Assembly: GCA_964106915.2 (NCBI GenBank)
Contig: OZ066919.1
From: Podarcis gaigeae
Taxonomy: Eukaryota
Reading direction: 5' to 3' (one strand)
DNA: 64,000 bases
The notes under the pieces: model-generated
Told to the model about the DNA's origin: nothing
Database searches by the model: none
Seen by the model: only the letters and a program-made list of their open reading frames with translations
Program-made: the position numbers and the translations under genes
Shown: piece after piece, positions 7,617-39,058 of the stretch
Numbering within the stretch: position 1 is the stretch's first letter
Layout: each line of letters opens with the position of its first letter

Positions 7617-9152
7617 CCATTGCTCCGGATCCTTTCCTTAACCCCTTCCCTCCTTACAAGGCCAGACCCCTCCTGCGATCACACGGGAGCGCAGAGGCCA
7701 ACATTCTCAATTTTAACGCTGCTTCATTTGACTCAGCTTCTGCATTTATATAATGTAAGGGGGGGTTGATAAACTTGATCCAACAGATGCTGCCCCATTA
7801 TTAGCCAGTCAGGTGACAACAACTATGCAGGCAAAAAAATATTTATTTTTTTTTGCCCACCTTCTTTCAGTCTCTTCAGCAACTAATCAGTTATTTGGTC
7901 TTCATGCTGTCAGGCAGCGTGTATCTCTCCATTTAGGTGGGTGGTAAGGCAAGCTTTTGTTTCATTTCACATGTATAGCTTTAGAAGTTTGATGCCAGCT
8001 GGGATGCCTTTGGGATTTGTTTTTCCTTGTAGGAGGGTCGCCATGAGAGAAAGAGTGTGTACATGGTGGGGGCGGATGAGATTGAATCCAAACAAAATGA
8101 AAACAGATTAAACAGTTGCCCACACAGCAAGGAGCAATTAGAGACAAGAGGGTGGGGAAATGGGGAAAAGAGAAAAGGAGAGAGAAAATTACTAACATGA
8201 GAGGATCCAGGTCTTTAGCTGGTTTTCAAAGATGAATAGAGCTCCCCTGGTGATGACTTGGCTTTTTCTCCCCCTCTTTTCAATTTATTTGGTTTTCTAT
8301 GCTGATTAAAAGTCCTACAAATAAATGCAATAGCATAAGTTATCTAATCTTAGCAAACTAATATCATCCACAATGTGTTCACAATTTACCCTGGAAAGAC
8401 ACAAATTTTTCTGATATTCCTGCAGTTCCAGAGGGAGCAACTTCCCCATTTTTTACCATCCTTACATTTTCCTCAATTTAACAACCATGTATTATTCTCC
8501 CTATTGATTTTTAATTCTTATTTCTTATTTCTTCCAGTTTTGTGCAATCTGTAATGTTGTAACGGAAAGATTTAATCCAGCGGGGATTTTGACACTGTTG
8601 CATTTAGATAAAGAGCAGCCATTGGATCAAATAGTAAAAGGGTCCCCACAATCTAATATAGGTTTTATTGTTTATATGTGTAGGTCCATCATACATGTAG
8701 AAAATTTCCTCTGTCTGTACCATAATTGTAGGAGGAAAAAATCCTTTCATTTTCAGAGGAAATAAATTTTTATGGATTTGTAAATTTTTGATAGCATTAA
8801 GCCTCAGTTGGGGCTTTGAACACACTGCATATCATTAATCTCTTCCAACCCAGAAAGGAAAGAGTTTTTTTCCAACCTCTGCTATAATGCAGTTCAGTTT
8901 ATTAGCCAGTGCTTGCAGAAGACATATTACTTTCCATGCACTCCTTGGGTGCATATAAAGAATGCTGCAGTTATTGAAGCAACATTCCTGGCCAGTTATA
9001 AAATACAACATGAGCCAAGTTGGCATTAAAATACCTGGCAAGACTCACCATCATTCAGTAAAGCAGATGACTTGACTTGCCAGCATAGCATGAGAAACTG
9101 GGGGCTTTATAATTGTACTGCTCTACAAGTGCCCATTCAGGTACTGCAGTTC

Positions 9153-9158
9153 AATAAA
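9153..9158 (+). terminator. Candidate FMOD polyadenylation signal (alternative AATAAA at 9527-9532)
   Basis: AATAAA followed by T/GT-rich sequence about 1.5 kb after the stop; the second candidate also has a T-rich downstream tract. Usage cannot be determined from DNA alone. Confidence 0.45.
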
Positions 9159-10321
9159 AGTTGTATCCCAAATTGTTTTGTACAGCAGAATCCCATTCTA
9201 GCGTCCCATGTGTTTCATTGCATTTGTTGTAACTTGTTTGCTTGGCTATAGAGTTGTCTCAGCTGAATTTCATACACATGGCAGCACCAGGTCTTGCTCT
9301 AAGAATGTATGCTTCTTTCGTCTCGAGGTTCTTCCCCCTCATTCACTCAATCCTTTCATTTGTGTGTGGCTCACGGAGGAGAGGAGACGTAGAAGGAGGA
9401 GCAAATGAGTTTTACGGGGATCTTGGGAAGTTCAAGATGCCATCGAAACTGCCTTGTGTTTAAAGTGTATGCTGATAATATAAAAGAAATATATAAAAGC
9501 ATGAATTGTAGATATCATTACTGATCAATAAAACCCTTTTTGTAATTGCATGGGATGCCTTCGAAACTACCATTTACCAGATTACATTTGAAATATCTGA
9601 TGTGATCAAGGAAAGAAATGAAGCCTCCCTTGGATGATTGGAAGAGATTAAGGTAGAATCTACATACATATAAAAACCGTTCTGAAAAAGTGTTTTTAAA
9701 AATACATTGAATCTTCCATAAGGCTCACCATCGCTATCTAGTGTCACATTTTATATTGCACTTAAAACACACTTAAAATGTTTGATTTGCAGCTGTATAG
9801 TTGAGTCCTGAACTTGTTTCTTCATAGGACATTTGGGGAATCAGATACTTGTATTGGTAGTTACTGTGTACCTTCTCCACATGCCCACCCACACAGGAAC
9901 TCCAGCTCAGCAGGCCCGGCATGAGCATGATGAGTGTAGACCACATAGACAAAGGTGGGAGATCTTGCTAGGAAACTTTTCATATCACATTTTATTCTCT
10001 TGGAAAGGGGTCTGGTACTGCACTGCAAACTTTTTGCTTTAATGTTTATAGCCACACTGAAAGTGCAGCAAGATGCAAAGACAGACACACCTTAAAAAGG
10101 GTCTGGCGATCACTGTGGTTATAAAAATATGTTTCTTCACAAAATATCCTCCTGTTCGTCAGATTATCTCCAGTCAGTATTCACACTGGAAAATTTCTGC
10201 TTTAGAAACTGAGCCAGGATTCGGAGGTATTGCACTGTGAATTCCCTTATCACTGCACCCAATTTGTCAGGCTTCATCTACTTATAAAAGTAGCTAATGC
10301 AGCTGCAAATTGCATCCAATC

Positions 10322-12490
10322 CTATATTTAAATAATATTTATTACTTTTAAAGCTTACAAAAAGGGAAAAGAAGAGAAAAAAAGACAAGAGGGAAAAAAC
10401 AAAAGAGAGAAAAAACAATACAATACAATATAAAAACAATACAAAACACAACCTTAACACATTAAACTAAACACATTAAACTAAACTAAACAAAACCCTA
10501 ACCCTAACCCTAAACAAAACAAAACAAAAACAATTTAAAAACATACATCACACCTTTTCCATACTCTATCTTTCATTCCCTTGTTTCCTCGACCTCCTCT
10601 CACCTCCCTTTTTGTATTCCACTTCTATTAATTGTTTCAGCAAATCCTTTCCATCTTTCTCTATTTTCTATCATATTATAAATATCTTAATATATTTTTA
10701 ACCTTATTTTCCATTAAAACTAAAATACTTATATATGCTTAACTCCTTATAACATTTCTACTAAGGCCATAAAATTTCATTCCACCATTTTTCTATCACT
10801 CATTAATTTTACAGTATTTCTATATATAAACTTTAAATTTTCCAATCTTCTTCCACCATCTCCTCTCCCTGGTTTCGGATTCTGCCAGTCCTTTCTGTCA
10901 ATTACATATATTCCATCAACCTGGAGATCTTATATCCGAGGCTCTTAACTCTTTTCCAGGTCCCTTCTGCAGGTCTTCTTCATATTCTTTAATGCTAAAG
11001 AGCAGATCTCGGGAAGACTCCGACCTAACAATGCTTTTATTCCTTCTCGACAGGTCAGGCAAATTTCCATAGTTGAAGCTAAGATCCATAAAGTGTTTCA
11101 GGACATGTTTCAAGATTCCTCCAAATCCAAAGGCCCCCAGAACTTCAATCTCCTCCAGACCGAAGTCCATGTCCCAAAAGTCAGTTAATCCCTGCATAGA
11201 AGGATCTTTCCAACTTTCCTTCTTCAGTCCAAGCTGGGATCCGATCCTCAAAATCTGACTTTTTCTAGATTCAATCATAAAAGGCCTCAACTTATAGTCC
11301 TCAATTTGCTTCTGTAAGACTGAGGATCCCGCTTGTATTACTTTAGGTTCAACAACAACAGCTTTCTCCTTCTCCTCCACAATTTGTCCTGCCAAAGTAG
11401 ATTCCTGTACCAAGTCCTGAATTATTTCTGTGTTGGTGCTCACTTTTTGTCTCAAATTAATCACATTTTGTCCCAAGTTAACAATTTTAGTAGTCATATA
11501 ATCCGTCTTGTTGTGAAGCTGTTCCAGTGAATAGCTTATCTTACATAATACAGTCACTATGGCTTCTCCTGTCAACATTCTTAAATGGTCCAAGGTCAAT
11601 CCCTGGTTCTCACAATTTCTTATCTTGCAGCTGGAGATTCCCCAGTTCCACTCCTGTAACAGTTTCAAAAGCTCCCTCTAGAGGGATACAATCTCCACTT
11701 GTATCAATCCTTTCAAACACAACTCAAGCAATAAAGATAGTTTCAATTTTCAGTTACTTTTCCTCCTTTTTAAATGCAGAAGAGGACAATGGAAACAGTA
11801 TACTTCTCTTATTTAGTTAGCTGTCAAATACGTTCTGTTCACAGTCAATGAACTCTCCCAAAATATCACTCTTTCTAGCAGCCCGTTTCCAGGTTCAGAG
11901 TGGTGGTAATTTGATTTTTCACTCTCTCCTGCAGGCTCGCTAGGTTCAAAATTTCCCCCCTCTTCTCCTGCTTCCAAGGGGGGTTTGGTGATTTTAACCG
12001 ATGGAAATTTAATCCTTTACCAAAGGTTTTCCAAGACTTTAGCTTGTAACATCTTTGCTTCAATCTATTTACAAAAGAGGAAGGCGGACTTCCTGTTTAA
12101 AACCTTCCCATTTCGATGCCAAATTAAGATATTTAAAGATCCAATTTTCCGTTCTACTCATGGGTAGTTGTTTAAAGTCCAATTGTCCATAGGAAAAAGT
12201 CAGCGCTCTCCGGCAACAGCAATGCGCCTTCACTCCATGAAAAAAGCAGTCGATTTGAAGTACCACGCCACTCACCCCACGTCGCTCCGGATCCCCAAAA
12301 CAGGGTTTCCCCGCGAGTAGGGGAGGCGCAAAAGGTGCCAGCCGAATCCCAGGTTCACAGGCTTCTCCCGCCTGTGATTTCAGTGGGTCTCCGCCTTCGC
12401 CGTGGCGGTCAGACCCTGGTTTCCACGGAGCAAGTTCCTCCCGATCGGAGGAGCTCTGCCATTGCCGGAGGCGCCAACCCAGAAGTCGCC
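10322..12490 (-). mobile_element. Full-length non-autonomous L1-derived retroposon (HAL1-like, ORF1 only)
   Basis: Exact 16-bp TSD caaattgcatccaatc (10306-10321 and 12491-12506). CpG-rich 5' end about 12200-12490. One long coiled-coil ORF. Sequence at about 10800-10920 is homologous to the L1 ORF2 end at 37091-37222. AT-rich 3'UTR with AATAAA at 10338-10343. No RT or EN. Confidence 0.8.
10916..11578 (-). CDS. L1 ORF1p-like coiled-coil protein of the HAL1-like element (220 aa from first ATG; frame is open from 11668)
   Basis: Heptad pattern ISYSLEQLHNKTDYMTTKIVNLGQNVINLRQKVSTNTEIIQDLV, then IESRKSQILRIG, loosely resembling the L1 ORF1p coiled-coil/RRM junction. Position after the 5'UTR fits ORF1. 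Confidence 0.55.
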   Translation of the reverse strand: MLTGEAIVTVLCKISYSLEQLHNKTDYMTTKIVNLGQNVINLRQKVSTNTEIIQDLVQESTLAGQIVEEKEKAVVVEPKVIQAGSSVLQKQIEDYKLRPFMIESRKSQILRIGSQLGLKKESWKDPSMQGLTDFWDMDFGLEEIEVLGAFGFGGILKHVLKHFMDLSFNYGNLPDLSRRNKSIVRSESSRDLLFSIKEYEEDLQKGPGKELRASDIRSPG

Positions 12491-13677
12491 CAAATTGCAT
12501 CCAATCTTGTCAAAATGTAAAAGAATTACAGCTATGACAAAATAATAACAATAATAATAATGGAAAATACAACAGTTCAGCTGAAGAAAAGAAGTGAATT
12601 ATTTCCAGATAAGTGTGCACAGGAATGCAAGATAAGGTACCTTGAAGTGAATAGCAACTCGTTTCACACGCAGCAGCTGGCAAACTTTGCCTTCAACTGT
12701 TAAGCATGGTGACATATTTCTAAACAATCCCCACTTTACCAAATGGGCCACTGCTATTTGGAGTTTGGAAGAGAAACCACAGAGACATGTGCTGCTTTGT
12801 GATATCTGGTCTGATTCACAGATAGAGAACATAGATGGAGGCAACTGGCCTACACACTCCTACCAGGCAAAAGAGATGCTATCCATTAGAGAAATATACC
12901 TGCACCCTACCCCCAGATGCCTCCAGCTACAGCCCTCTGCCTGTGTCTTCTTGCTTCTTCCTGCCCCTGCAAAACACTGCTGCTTCTGTTGCCTCACACA
13001 CAGAGACTTTATGTCCATCTCCTCCTCCCAGCAAGGGTGAAGGGGAAAGGTTCACTGTTGGCCCCACCCATTCAAATCACTCCGAGTCCTTCAGCTATTT
13101 CCTGACCTTTTAAATTGGTTGGTAAACATCAGCTGCAAGGTTTAGGATAGGGTTGCCATATTTCAAAAACTTGAAAGTTGTTGAGCCAAGAAAAAGTGAC
13201 TTGCCTTTAGAAAATTCCTCCCCGATGTCAGTTCCGCCTTTGAAATCCCAGACGTATGGCAGCCCTGTTTAAAAATACAATATATACAGTAAGCAGAGCT
13301 TTCAGCAATCTGCAACAATGACAAGTGAAGACTCTATCAATACTGCTTAATTAATTTCTAGAAGCTCAGGTTCATATGTGTCTGAAAGGAATATCCTCTG
13401 ATCTAGAAATCTGCAGACTTTATCTGCGTACTAAATGTGGTTTAAATGCATTCTGATTTTGTTTGGGGGTGTTTTAAATGCTTCAAATAATCCTGGATTA
13501 AGCCTTGGCATTGAAACAAGATGCCAAAACTGAGCTTGGCACAGATTCCGCCATGCCCAGTAGCCATTCTTGGTGTGGGAATAAGGGTGTTGCAAGGAAC
13601 CAAAAGCATCCTTACTTTGATTTCTGAAATGCAGGGAGGTATGCAATTAATCAGCAACAGAAATCATGTGATCTAGT

Positions 13678-35733: not shown

Positions 35734-36350
35734 GTATGCTATGATTGCAAGTTTGGGTGGAGTCATTTAATCTCCATCTATACTCATGATAAAAGACAAA
35801 ATATCCTCCATATAGAAAAAACACAGCCATAGAGTTTTGCAAACAATGCTCTTGCTAAGCAATTGTGGTCCTTTAAGGTGCCACAAGATATAGAGCCCTT
35901 GACCCAGCCCATTCCCTGACCTCATTGGGTTACTTACAGACACTCTGAGGCAAGGGTCCCTGAATTGTTTGTGGAGAGATAAGACAACTACAGCAGATCC
36001 TTAATGGGCATTCATGCTCATTTGTTTTGGGGGAGATTAGATGGCTGTTGAGTCAAGCAAGTGTCATCCCACACTTTCCCTATCACTTCTCTTACCACAA
36101 AATGTCCGATCTTTTGGAGAGCCTGATGCCATTTTGCAAGAGCTCCAGATAAGTTTTAACTGCACAGCTTGAATTTGCCAGTATGCAATTGATTGCCAGC
36201 AATAGGGACTATCTGAAAGCACACAAATGCAAAACAACTCTGGCAATCCTGAGGACAAGACATGACCCCTCATCTCCATCCCTAAACTTGAAATTTGGAG
36301 TATCCAGGACACTGATTTCAGTGCCAAGTACAAAATTCACACTACAATGA

Positions 36351-37613
36351 GACTTAACATGGAGGCCCATTGGCCTAAATATTGGGAAATAATTGAAAAA
36401 ATTGGAGACAATTGGAGGTTGTTAAGTTTGGAGAAATTGAAAACTAAGGTACGAGACTGGCTGCACTATGCGCAAATTCAAGAGGTATTTAAAATAGATA
36501 AAAAAGTTGGATTCCAGGTGGAAAAATCGAAACTAGAGACTGAATTGTTAGAGCCAAAAAGTAAACTATTTTCGAGAATGTATAATTTGCTGCTTAAGTG
36601 GAATACACAGGATGAGACAGTCAAATCCGCCATGATAAAATGGGCGCAGGATGTGGGGCACAACATTATGTTTGTAGACTGGGAAAGGTTATGGAACACC
36701 GGTTTGAAATTTACGGCATGCACTGCCCTGAAGGAAAATATTATGAAAATTGTATACCGGTGGTACATGACCCCAGTCAAGCTAGCTAAGATATACCATC
36801 TGTCTGACAATAAATGTTGGAAATGTAGAGAGGCGGAAGGGACATTCTTTCATCTCTGGTGGACCTGCCCGAAAGTGAAGGTCTTCTGGGAAATGATCCA
36901 TAATGAACTAAAAAAGGTACTGAGATTTACCTTACCTAAGAAACCAGAGGCCTTCCTTCTGGGCATGGTGGACCAGAGAGTGCTTAAGAAGGACAGAACC
37001 TTTTTCATGTATGCTACCACAGCAGCAAGGATCCTGATTGCAAAATATTGGAAGACACAAGATTTACCCACGCTGGAGGAATGGCAATCGCAGTTGATGG
37101 ACTATATGGAATTGGCTGAAATGACTGGCAGAATCCGAGACGCGGGAGAAGAAACAATTGAGGAGGACTGGGAAAAGTTTAAGGACTATTTGAAAAAACA
37201 CTATAAGCTGTATGAATGTTAAAAAATGCACCTTTCAGGAAATTCTAGCTTCAGCAAATGTAAGTTAATGAAATGAAAATTAAGACACAAGAATTCAGAG
37301 GTAAAATAATGAAACAACTTTATTGTGTTTAATATAAAACATATAAGAATTGAGTTACAGTAAAATTGAAAATAGGGAACATGATAAAATGGAAGTTACA
37401 ATAAGTTTTGAAATAAGTTAACAAATTGCTGATGCTTTATAAGACAGAGAACGCAGGGTTCGGAGGATGTGGGGAAGTCCTATAGATTAGATGGAAAAAG
37501 AATATGGAAATTTGTTATTTTTTTACTTTACTTTCTTATAACCACTCTTTATTCTTTTTTCTGTATTTCTGTATTTCTAAAAAGCAATAAAAATATTTAA
37601 AACAAAAACAAAA
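36351..37613 (+). mobile_element. 5'-truncated young L1 LINE (ORF2 C-terminal about 290 codons, 3'UTR, A-rich tail)
   Basis: 21-bp TSD acaaaattcacactacaatga (36330-36350 and 37614-37634). Uninterrupted frame to 37222 containing the L1 ORF2 zinc-knuckle CWKCREAEGTFFHLWWTC. AATAAA then an (AAAAAC)n tail. Confidence 0.92.
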
Positions 37614-38377
37614 ACAAAATTCACACTACAATGAATACACATGAACCATGAGATTAGTCTTGGCATAAGCTTCCAATCTCCTGCAAGCCTTGGTGCTAGA
37701 ACTGAGTTGTGCCACTGTGCTGCTGCTGAGACTCCTGATTCTGAACCTCTGAGGGCAGATTGACACCTCAACAGCTGCTTCTTGTAGGGGAAAGCGTCTT
37801 TGGGAGTAAGCAATTTGAAGAGAGAAGAGGCAGGGAGAGGGAATGCTTTCCCTCTGAAAATCACCCTCCCCCTTCGTCCTTAGCTACAGGATTATTTTGT
37901 TCCCATTAACTATGGACCCCAAATTTGGGATCCTCTCCAAACCTGTGCCAAACAATTTTGCAGTTGTTTTGTAGCACCCCATGAACTGAGTAACTGGCAT
38001 ATCAAACACGGGGTTTGTAGTTAACACCCCAAAATCCAACAATGTTCAGATCACAGTTTTCAGCTATGTGTTTATAACGGTGAATATCTAGAACTATGGA
38101 AGGTGCACAGCAGCTTGGAGCAATGTTACAACCCAGACACTTCTCCCATCAAATTTGCCTCTTTTACACTAAGAGAAGCAGGTGTTGGAATTTTGTCACA
38201 TCAACTGACATGTCACACAGTAGTTTACCCACAAGCTTCTGTGCCAATGAACCAGCTCATAGGATGGAGATGTAAGATTTCCTAGCGTACTCAAACTTGA
38301 TGTAACACATTCACCCTTCGGTTGGCATGATCAAGCATGCTCTAATTTGTCCAAATGCTGGATATACAAATATGGTA

Positions 38378-38844
38378 CAGTGGTACCTTGGTTCTCAAAC
38401 GCCTTGGTACTCAAACAACTTGGAACCCAAATACTGCAAACTCAGAAGTAAGTGTTCCGGTTTACAAACATTTTTCGGAAGCCAAACGTGCTCCGTTTCG
38501 AGTGTTACGCTGAGGTCTGTCTGTTTTTGCTATTTATTTTGCGTTTTTGCTTTTGCAGCTTTTTTGTTCTGTTTTTGTGATTGTGTGGAACCCAGTTCAG
38601 CTACTGATTGACTGATTGTGTGACTGCAGTACATTGTTTATTGCTTTCATTTTATGGATCAATGGTCTCGTTAGGTAGTAAAATTCATGTTAAATTGCTG
38701 TTTTAGGGGTTGTTTTTAAATGTCTGGAATGGATTAATCCATTTTGCATTACTATCTAAGGGAAAGCATGCCTTGGTTTTGGAACACTGTGGTTTAGGAA
38801 CTGACTTCCGGAATGGATTAAATTTGAGAACCAAGGCACCACTG
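38378..38844. mobile_element. Tigger/mariner-like MITE (467 bp)
   Basis: TA-CAGTGGTACCTTGGTTCTCAAA...TTTGAGAACCAAGGCACCACTG-TA (22-bp TIR, 1 mismatch). Confidence 0.88.
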
Positions 38845-38908
38845 TATTGTATTGTATTGTATTGTATTGTATTGTATTGTATTGTATTGTATTGTATTGT
38901 ATTGTATT
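38843..38908. repeat. (TGTAT)n microsatellite
   Basis: Direct reading; starts in the MITE terminus. Confidence 0.95.
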
Positions 38909-39058
38909 ATTCCTTTGCTGGAACCAGCATGTCCCATAAGACCTGATCAGGCATGCCCTGCAAGCCTCAACTAGTCCAGAATGGTGCATGACATGCTGCT
39001 TCATGACCTCTTTCAGCATTGCATGCCTGGACCTGCTGACACCCTAAAACAATTGAGC

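Follow-up and report, generated by a model that had tools for sequence, protein, structure and literature searches.

A 64,000-nucleotide stretch of the genome of Podarcis gaigeae (GenBank assembly GCA_964106915.2, contig OZ066919.1; the whole stretch is called the window below) holds, on its minus strand at 10322-12490, a 2169-bp unit that is very likely a full-length, apparently coding-competent copy of an L1-derived, non-autonomous retroposon family of the wall lizards (Podarcis). The unit is complete. It is bracketed by a target-site duplication (TSD), the exact 16-mer CAAATTGCATCCAATC, which occurs exactly twice in the window, once upstream of the 5' end of the element (12491-12506, minus strand) and once downstream of its 3' end (10306-10321, minus strand). 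The depth of Logan contigs from four public runs (X1, X3, X14 and X15), aligned to 9800-13000 at 80% likeness, jumps from about 30 to thousands precisely at these limits. A preliminary description, made from the letters alone, had proposed this unit and its duplication together with a CpG-rich head, a leader of about 0.9 kb, an open frame of 220-250 codons, an AT-rich 3' untranslated region (UTR) with AATAAA, and the absence of endonuclease and reverse transcriptase, and the anatomy given here bears it out on each of these points.

Read along the strand of the element, the first 250 nt (12241-12490, minus strand) form the CpG-rich head, with 61.6% GC and an observed-to-expected CpG ratio of 0.85 versus 0.29 for the window; the head is a putative internal promoter. 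The start of the unit agrees with that of the family, as contigs of run X15 (organism H) stop at 12486-12487. From the element start to the first ATG of the open reading frame (ORF) the leader, or 5'UTR, measures 912 nt; the part behind the head (11579-12240, minus strand) contains no long frame, carries six upstream ATGs and is high-copy in all four runs. The gene itself (10916-11578, minus strand; stop TGA at 10916-10918) would encode a reduced ORF1p-like protein of 220 aa. Its frame is open over 10916-11668, giving 250 codons from a TTG (11668) and 220 from the ATG (11578), with 23 and 20 stops in the remaining two frames of the same interval; the probability of 220 open codons given the composition is about 6e-8. 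The ATG lines up with the start methionine of the closest protein relatives, called group A below. No other long frame is present in the unit, further L1 similarity was not found by tblastx, and neither the ORF list nor tblastx gave any endonuclease or reverse transcriptase sequence within the 2169 bp. Likewise, Rfam at E values up to 1 had no match in the unit, and no second copy of the element lies within the window.

Directly behind the ORF follows a broken remnant of the last 42 codons of L1 ORF2 (10793-10918, minus strand), recognised by nucleotide alignment to an L1 elsewhere in the window. The remnant reads MEYM*LTERTGRIRNQGEEMVEEDWKI*, its ATG overlapping the TGA of the ORF (TGATG), and it matches the ORF2 end of that L1 at 37093-37222 with 74% identity over 137 nt (BLASTN). 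It is damaged by a single in-frame stop, TAA in place of GAA, and by the loss of 2 nt; the position and the broken state first attributed to it stand, and only its length, put at roughly 40 codons, needs correction to 42. The rest of the unit is an AT-rich 3'UTR of L1 type (10322-10792, minus strand; 27.8% GC), in each run more abundant than any other part of the unit, with AATAAA at 10338-10343, 16 nt from the element end. That end, ...TTTAAATATAG, abuts the TSD directly and has no poly(A) tail. A microsatellite block occupies 10359-10529 of the 3'UTR and includes three perfect vertebrate telomere units (TTAGGG on the element strand) at 10496-10513. A separate (TGTAT)n microsatellite of about 14 units at 38843-38911 gives spurious BLAST matches to the repeats of this 3'UTR.

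The junction between the ORF1-derived and ORF2-derived parts (10919-10932, minus strand) is placed by nucleotide alignment and by the point at which contigs of true L1s diverge. The stop codon of the ORF sits in ORF2-derived sequence, TTGATGG, which in another frame encodes the ..L-M-D.. of ORF2. Approximately 14,800 contig pieces aligned to the locus, and what is said here of junctions and variants at the contig level holds among the matches listed. Contigs that match the 3' side alone part from the element at 10918/10920, one of them continuing, in reverse complement, into LPTLEEWQS, which is real ORF2; the breakpoint is fixed by this divergence. In run X15 a 355-nt contig bridges the junction; it covers 10640-10993, differs by 13 mismatches and one gap, and has 73 nt on the ORF side. 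Two junction patterns compared with metagenome contigs gave no match, as expected for lizard DNA.

The same contigs speak to the insertion and to its abundance. Single contigs of X1 (organism A) and of X3 (organism B) join the flanks to the element ends (9800-10356 and about 12443/12458-13000), which places the insertion at this site in both organisms; the flanks of the two differ at about 0.8% of positions. In X14 (organism G) and X15 the pile-up covers the unit without flank sequence. Summed depth in X1 is about 30 over the flanks, 8,000-12,000 over the ORF, 11,000-46,000 over the leader and 150,000-233,000 over 10549-10976, a pattern repeated in X3, X14 and X15; all parts of the unit are thus repeated hundreds-fold, with the proviso that Logan depth is not a copy number. 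The far deeper 3' part is as expected if it is common to true L1s and 5'-truncated copies. At least 99% likeness to pieces of the element is found in 491 contigs of X1. The corresponding number in X14 is 1,130, with a summed depth about ten times that of X1 and with flanks almost absent at 80% likeness, so that either the locus is absent there or X14 comes from a distant species sharing near-identical family members. The 5' third of the leader (12047-12474) is also 2.5-4 times deeper in contigs than the ORF, and the head may be shared with other families, possibly an L1 partner or sister subfamilies.

With the encoded protein itself, Pfam (E up to 10), phmmer against the PDB, the ESM Atlas and a word-index protein search returned nothing usable, and there was no match to Transposase_22. 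An exhaustive HMMER search found 13 relatives, among which two groups are distinguished. Group A comprises P0001, P0003, P0006 (with P0014-16), P0012 and P0013, together with the shorter P0002 and the fragment P0008. Its full-length proteins have 199-215 aa and are 24-41% identical to the query over its length; P0002 (174 aa) is 38% identical and P0008 48%. A conserved C-terminal block, ..RDL..K..QKG.ERDLRASD.RSPG, is present in all of group A except P0002. P0001, P0003, P0006, P0012 and P0013 align through the last residue of the query, and P0008 finishes with this motif as well; the simplest reading of an identical end residue would be a common junction. In Podarcis lilfordi, P0013 is annotated as a 'hypothetical predicted protein', and the other group A proteins come from Logan contigs of about 1 kb. 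Group B consists of full-size ORF1p-like proteins: P0004 (Podarcis raffonei), P0005 (P. lilfordi), and P0007 and P0011 (P. muralis). All named relatives are from Podarcis.

The two groups connect the small protein to L1. P0004 and the query are 48% identical over 125 aa, and the group A and group B profiles are collinear (hhalign 99.1%, E 5e-19, 199 columns). P0007 in turn matches human L1 ORF1p (2ykp) at an E value of 0.0046, from the end of the coiled coil through the RNA-recognition motif (RRM) and the C-terminal domain (CTD) to the LRDF motif. The similarity to ORF1p by which the preliminary description proposed to judge the ORF is therefore present, the link of the query to human ORF1p being indirect, via lizard ORF1p; a word-index search with the group A alignment returned two already known members only, and a PDB profile search with group A gave no ORF1p match. 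Compared with lizard ORF1p, group A has in common the loss of about 40 aa from within the RRM and of about 17 aa from within the CTD (hhalign, MAFFT), and it also lacks the basic N-terminus and the last 30-40 residues. These shared deletions and the shared end indicate a single founder. The label 'ORF1-only' is too generous, as neither the RRM (about half of it lost) nor the CTD (lost in part) is whole, and the basic N-terminus and C-terminal tail are missing too. Set beside a Transposase_22 or type II ORF1p, the protein has an incomplete RRM (no Pfam match, about 40 aa absent, low local confidence) and a CTD of which only the (N)Y..L..R and LRD motifs are left; the trimerising N-terminal coiled coil is present by prediction. 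Descent lies outside the mammalian L1 lineages, the closest full ORF1p relatives being P0004, P0005, P0007 and P0011 of Podarcis. The branches of group A are long (0.4-1.7 changes per site), which would indicate an old or fast-evolving family, and this copy sits on a short branch close to the group A base.

One member of group B has an unusual annotation. P0011 (XP_028576234.1, Podarcis muralis, 'TRIM39-like') begins with a RING, a B-box and a coiled coil (Pfam E 1e-12 and 6e-11) and continues into an ORF1p-like RRM and CTD, at the place where a TRIM39-like protein is expected to carry PRY/SPRY. The sequence would fit a gene model that reads through into an L1 or, alternatively, a TRIM-ORF1p fusion, the latter a possible anti-L1 factor.

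The only confidently predicted part of the small protein is the helix of residues 4-75 (11354-11569, minus strand), which AlphaFold2 (AF2), run with a 13-sequence alignment, places at a predicted local distance difference test (pLDDT) of 82-95; residues 100-220 reach 30-46. In a three-copy model of residues 1-100 the contacts are in register and at heptad spacing over residues 2-60, as in a parallel coiled coil of the ORF1p type, so that the long heptad coiled coil read directly from the sequence is upheld by the prediction. The model scores 0.78 versus 0.49 for the best control, with runs agreeing in at least 82% of contacts and a partner pLDDT of at least 74; of proteins solved as one-chain pairs 21 of 30 reached the mark, and of those solved as single chains none of 23 did, a calibration that is for two copies where this job has three, that is weaker on eukaryotes, and whose passing may reflect memory of solved ORF1p coiled coils. 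The prediction supports oligomerisation of the small protein via its coiled coil. Across six other lineages the heptad core is hydrophobic in 69% of residues versus 31% elsewhere (Mann-Whitney p=0.0003). A 21-nt tandem duplication (11440-11488, minus strand; period 21 and 2.4 copies in Tandem Repeats Finder) equals one extra heptad and corresponds to an insertion of 7 residues that sets this copy apart from the rest of group A. More heptad repeats of this sort are found in full lizard ORF1p relatives, and the length of the coiled coil seems, from these sequences, to vary in units of a heptad. In its coiled coil this copy shares 46% identity with the L1 ORF1p P0004, compared with 16-36% for intact group A members and 45% for the decayed copy P0009; its C-terminal part is closest to group A. 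Trees of the two partitions (coiled coil and rest) showed no supported conflict.

Frames of about 200 codons with a common start and stop persist at 24-48% identity; because they stay open, and because the heptad core is conserved in spite of only 16-36% identity in the coiled coil, the comparison suggests that the ORF is kept by selection in replicating lineages. The history that may be pieced together starts with an L1 in which all sequence separating the ORF1 end from the final 42 codons of ORF2 would have been deleted, and whose descendants would have diversified into several subfamilies. Transcription would begin at the CpG-rich head and be followed by translation of the small protein, which appears to retain a parallel coiled coil together with the beginning of the RRM, a fragment of the CTD and the conserved C-terminal motif. 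The RNA would then be reverse-transcribed at a nicked target (target-primed) by ORF2p provided in trans from autonomous L1s with the same 3' end, a step that would yield the 16-bp TSD. Mobilisation in trans by L1 ORF2p is inferred from that shared 3' end and from a TSD of L1 size. The small protein most likely oligomerises via its coiled coil and may thereby help the RNA to reach, or compete for, the L1 machinery. The family appears abundant and old and most likely borrows L1 machinery in the manner of the mammalian half-L1 elements.

Several observations weigh against this account. The evidence for a common junction amounts to one bridging contig and a shared protein C-terminus. Contig depth in Logan cannot be equated with copies, and true L1s dominate the 3' part. 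The A tail is missing. The 14 listed family variants in the ORF are distributed over codon positions 1/2/3 as 3/5/6, too few and without an excess at the third position, and the set of relatives is biased in that gene callers report open frames only. An RNA-binding activity like that of ORF1p is doubtful, because the C-terminal 120 residues are predicted at a pLDDT of 30-46 and are recognised neither by Pfam nor by a PDB profile search. Finally, mobilisation in trans and promoter function are both read from sequence features.

Other explanations of the unit are less probable. An autonomous 6-kb L1 might have been internally deleted at or after insertion here, the high-copy signal coming from intact parents only. 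Any deleted L1 would indeed show 5' and 3' parts that pile up as high-copy, and the junction evidence is drawn from few of the roughly 14,800 contig pieces. Yet a contig in another organism bridges the junction without flank sequence, five diverged proteins of 199-215 aa end at the very stop that the junction made, where full lizard ORF1p runs 30-40 aa further, and two further deletions in the ORF relative to full ORF1p are common to the relatives. A one-off deletion is very improbable and was rejected on these grounds: the bridging contig, the common protein end and the two additional shared deletions. A family descended from one deletion, which the preliminary description had preferred to an accident after insertion, is instead supported by the multi-copy unit, the bridging contig at about 10920 and relatives with the same end and deletions. 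Alternatively, the short ORF might be the normal ORF1 of an autonomous L1 lineage with a small ORF1p, of which a few copies have lost ORF2. Leader and ORF are multi-copy, and the aligned stretch cannot reveal what most copies carry downstream. This is nevertheless hardly credible, given that the stop codon lies inside sequence homologous to the ORF2 end, that five full-length relatives end there, and that the readable contigs at 10918/10920 match the 3' side only, with ORF2 upstream in place of this ORF.

A third alternative accepts a real and L1-dependent family and questions the role of the protein. Here the small protein would be unneeded for the mobilisation of its own element, being either a slowly decaying relic or a factor that acts on L1, for example by joining L1 ORF1p trimers through its coiled coil, as a poison or an adaptor. 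In keeping with this view, the protein lacks half of the RRM and part of the CTD, and its C-terminal half is predicted at low confidence; mixed oligomers are conceivable with a coiled coil 46% identical to that of P0004 (intact group A members reach 16-36%), and truncated human ORF1 proteins are reported to suppress L1 in trans (PMC5605252). A pure relic, however, would not retain, over lineages of only 24-48% identity, 200-codon frames with a common start, a common stop and the heptad pattern. Taken together, a dispensable or L1-directed protein appears unlikely, and a protein-coding family that depends on L1 and uses its own product is the preferred reading.

A bolder version of the preferred reading is conceivable and is offered tentatively: lacertids may harbour old, diversified, protein-coding parasites of L1 whose gene has been cut down to a trimeric coiled coil and a short C-terminal motif and is kept by selection. 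If true, a minimal ORF1p module without a working RRM or CTD would suffice for access to the L1 machinery, perhaps through co-assembly with L1 ORF1p, and the family would provide a natural dissection of which ORF1p function counts for mobilisation in trans. More broadly, the reason why half-L1 elements keep ORF1 is unsettled, and an independently arisen lizard family offers a comparative test; a diversified one could reveal which part of ORF1p an L1 parasite truly needs. There are consequences for annotation as well, as such proteins escape Pfam and are listed in Podarcis gene sets as 'hypothetical protein' (CAI7935145.1).

Among known systems, the most immediate comparison is with the autonomous-type L1 in the window, a 3' fragment at 36347-37620 (plus strand) in which ORF2 runs to 37222 with an open C-terminal stretch of 291 codons, nothing upstream is open beyond 106 codons, and a 3'UTR of about 400 nt ends in AGCAATAAAAATATTTAAAA(CAAAA)n. 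The two have in common the C-terminal codons of ORF2, a G-rich block in the 3'UTR and a terminal AG(Y)AATAAA..TTTAAA (at about 37585-37600 in the fragment). They differ in that the fragment belongs to another L1 lineage, carries ORF2 upstream of the shared part and has a (CAAAA)n tail. With vertebrate L1 ORF1p (coiled coil, RRM and CTD; 2ykp, 2ldy; Transposase_22) the small protein shares its collinearity with lizard ORF1p (99.1%), a predicted parallel N-terminal coiled coil, and traces of RRM strand 1 (..ILRI..), of an AF.(L/F)G motif and of the CTD motifs (N)Y..L and LRD. Compared with vertebrate ORF1p its RRM is short of about 40 aa and its CTD of about 17 aa, and the basic residues of the NLRI motif are replaced; it shows neither a Pfam or PDB match nor a confident fold beyond the helix. 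The truncated human ORF1 proteins for which trans suppression of L1 is reported are similar in being shortened forms of ORF1p that keep the oligomerisation helix (PMC5605252); they stem from decayed human L1 loci and not from a replicating family. An inhibitory role of the lizard protein toward L1 is speculation by analogy.

The closest parallel is with HAL1, the half-L1, described in PMC5753468 as a non-autonomous L1 derivative that encodes ORF1p only and arose several times in mammals; that paper cites Smit 1999 and Bao and Jurka 2010. Full-text literature searches yielded no publication that connects HAL1 or half-L1 with lizards or lacertids, and within the searchable literature half-L1 elements are described from mammals only. 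The HAL1-like character proposed at the outset is matched by the lizard element in its L1 homology and in its nature as a complete unit free of endonuclease and reverse transcriptase: like HAL1 it derives from L1, has lost ORF2, keeps one ORF1-derived gene, appears to form a multi-copy family with L1-type insertion marks, and presumably uses L1 ORF2p in trans. Unlike HAL1, it seems to have arisen independently within lizard L1s, its nearest full ORF1p relatives being from Podarcis; it retains the last 42 codons of ORF2 as a broken remnant; and this copy has no A tail. Further, where HAL1 is described in that source as encoding ORF1p, the lizard protein is without its two termini, some of the CTD and roughly half of the RRM, and it escapes Pfam. 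Judged by its sequence, the element is a lizard analogue of HAL1, one that would work in the same way from an independent lizard origin and with a far more reduced protein.

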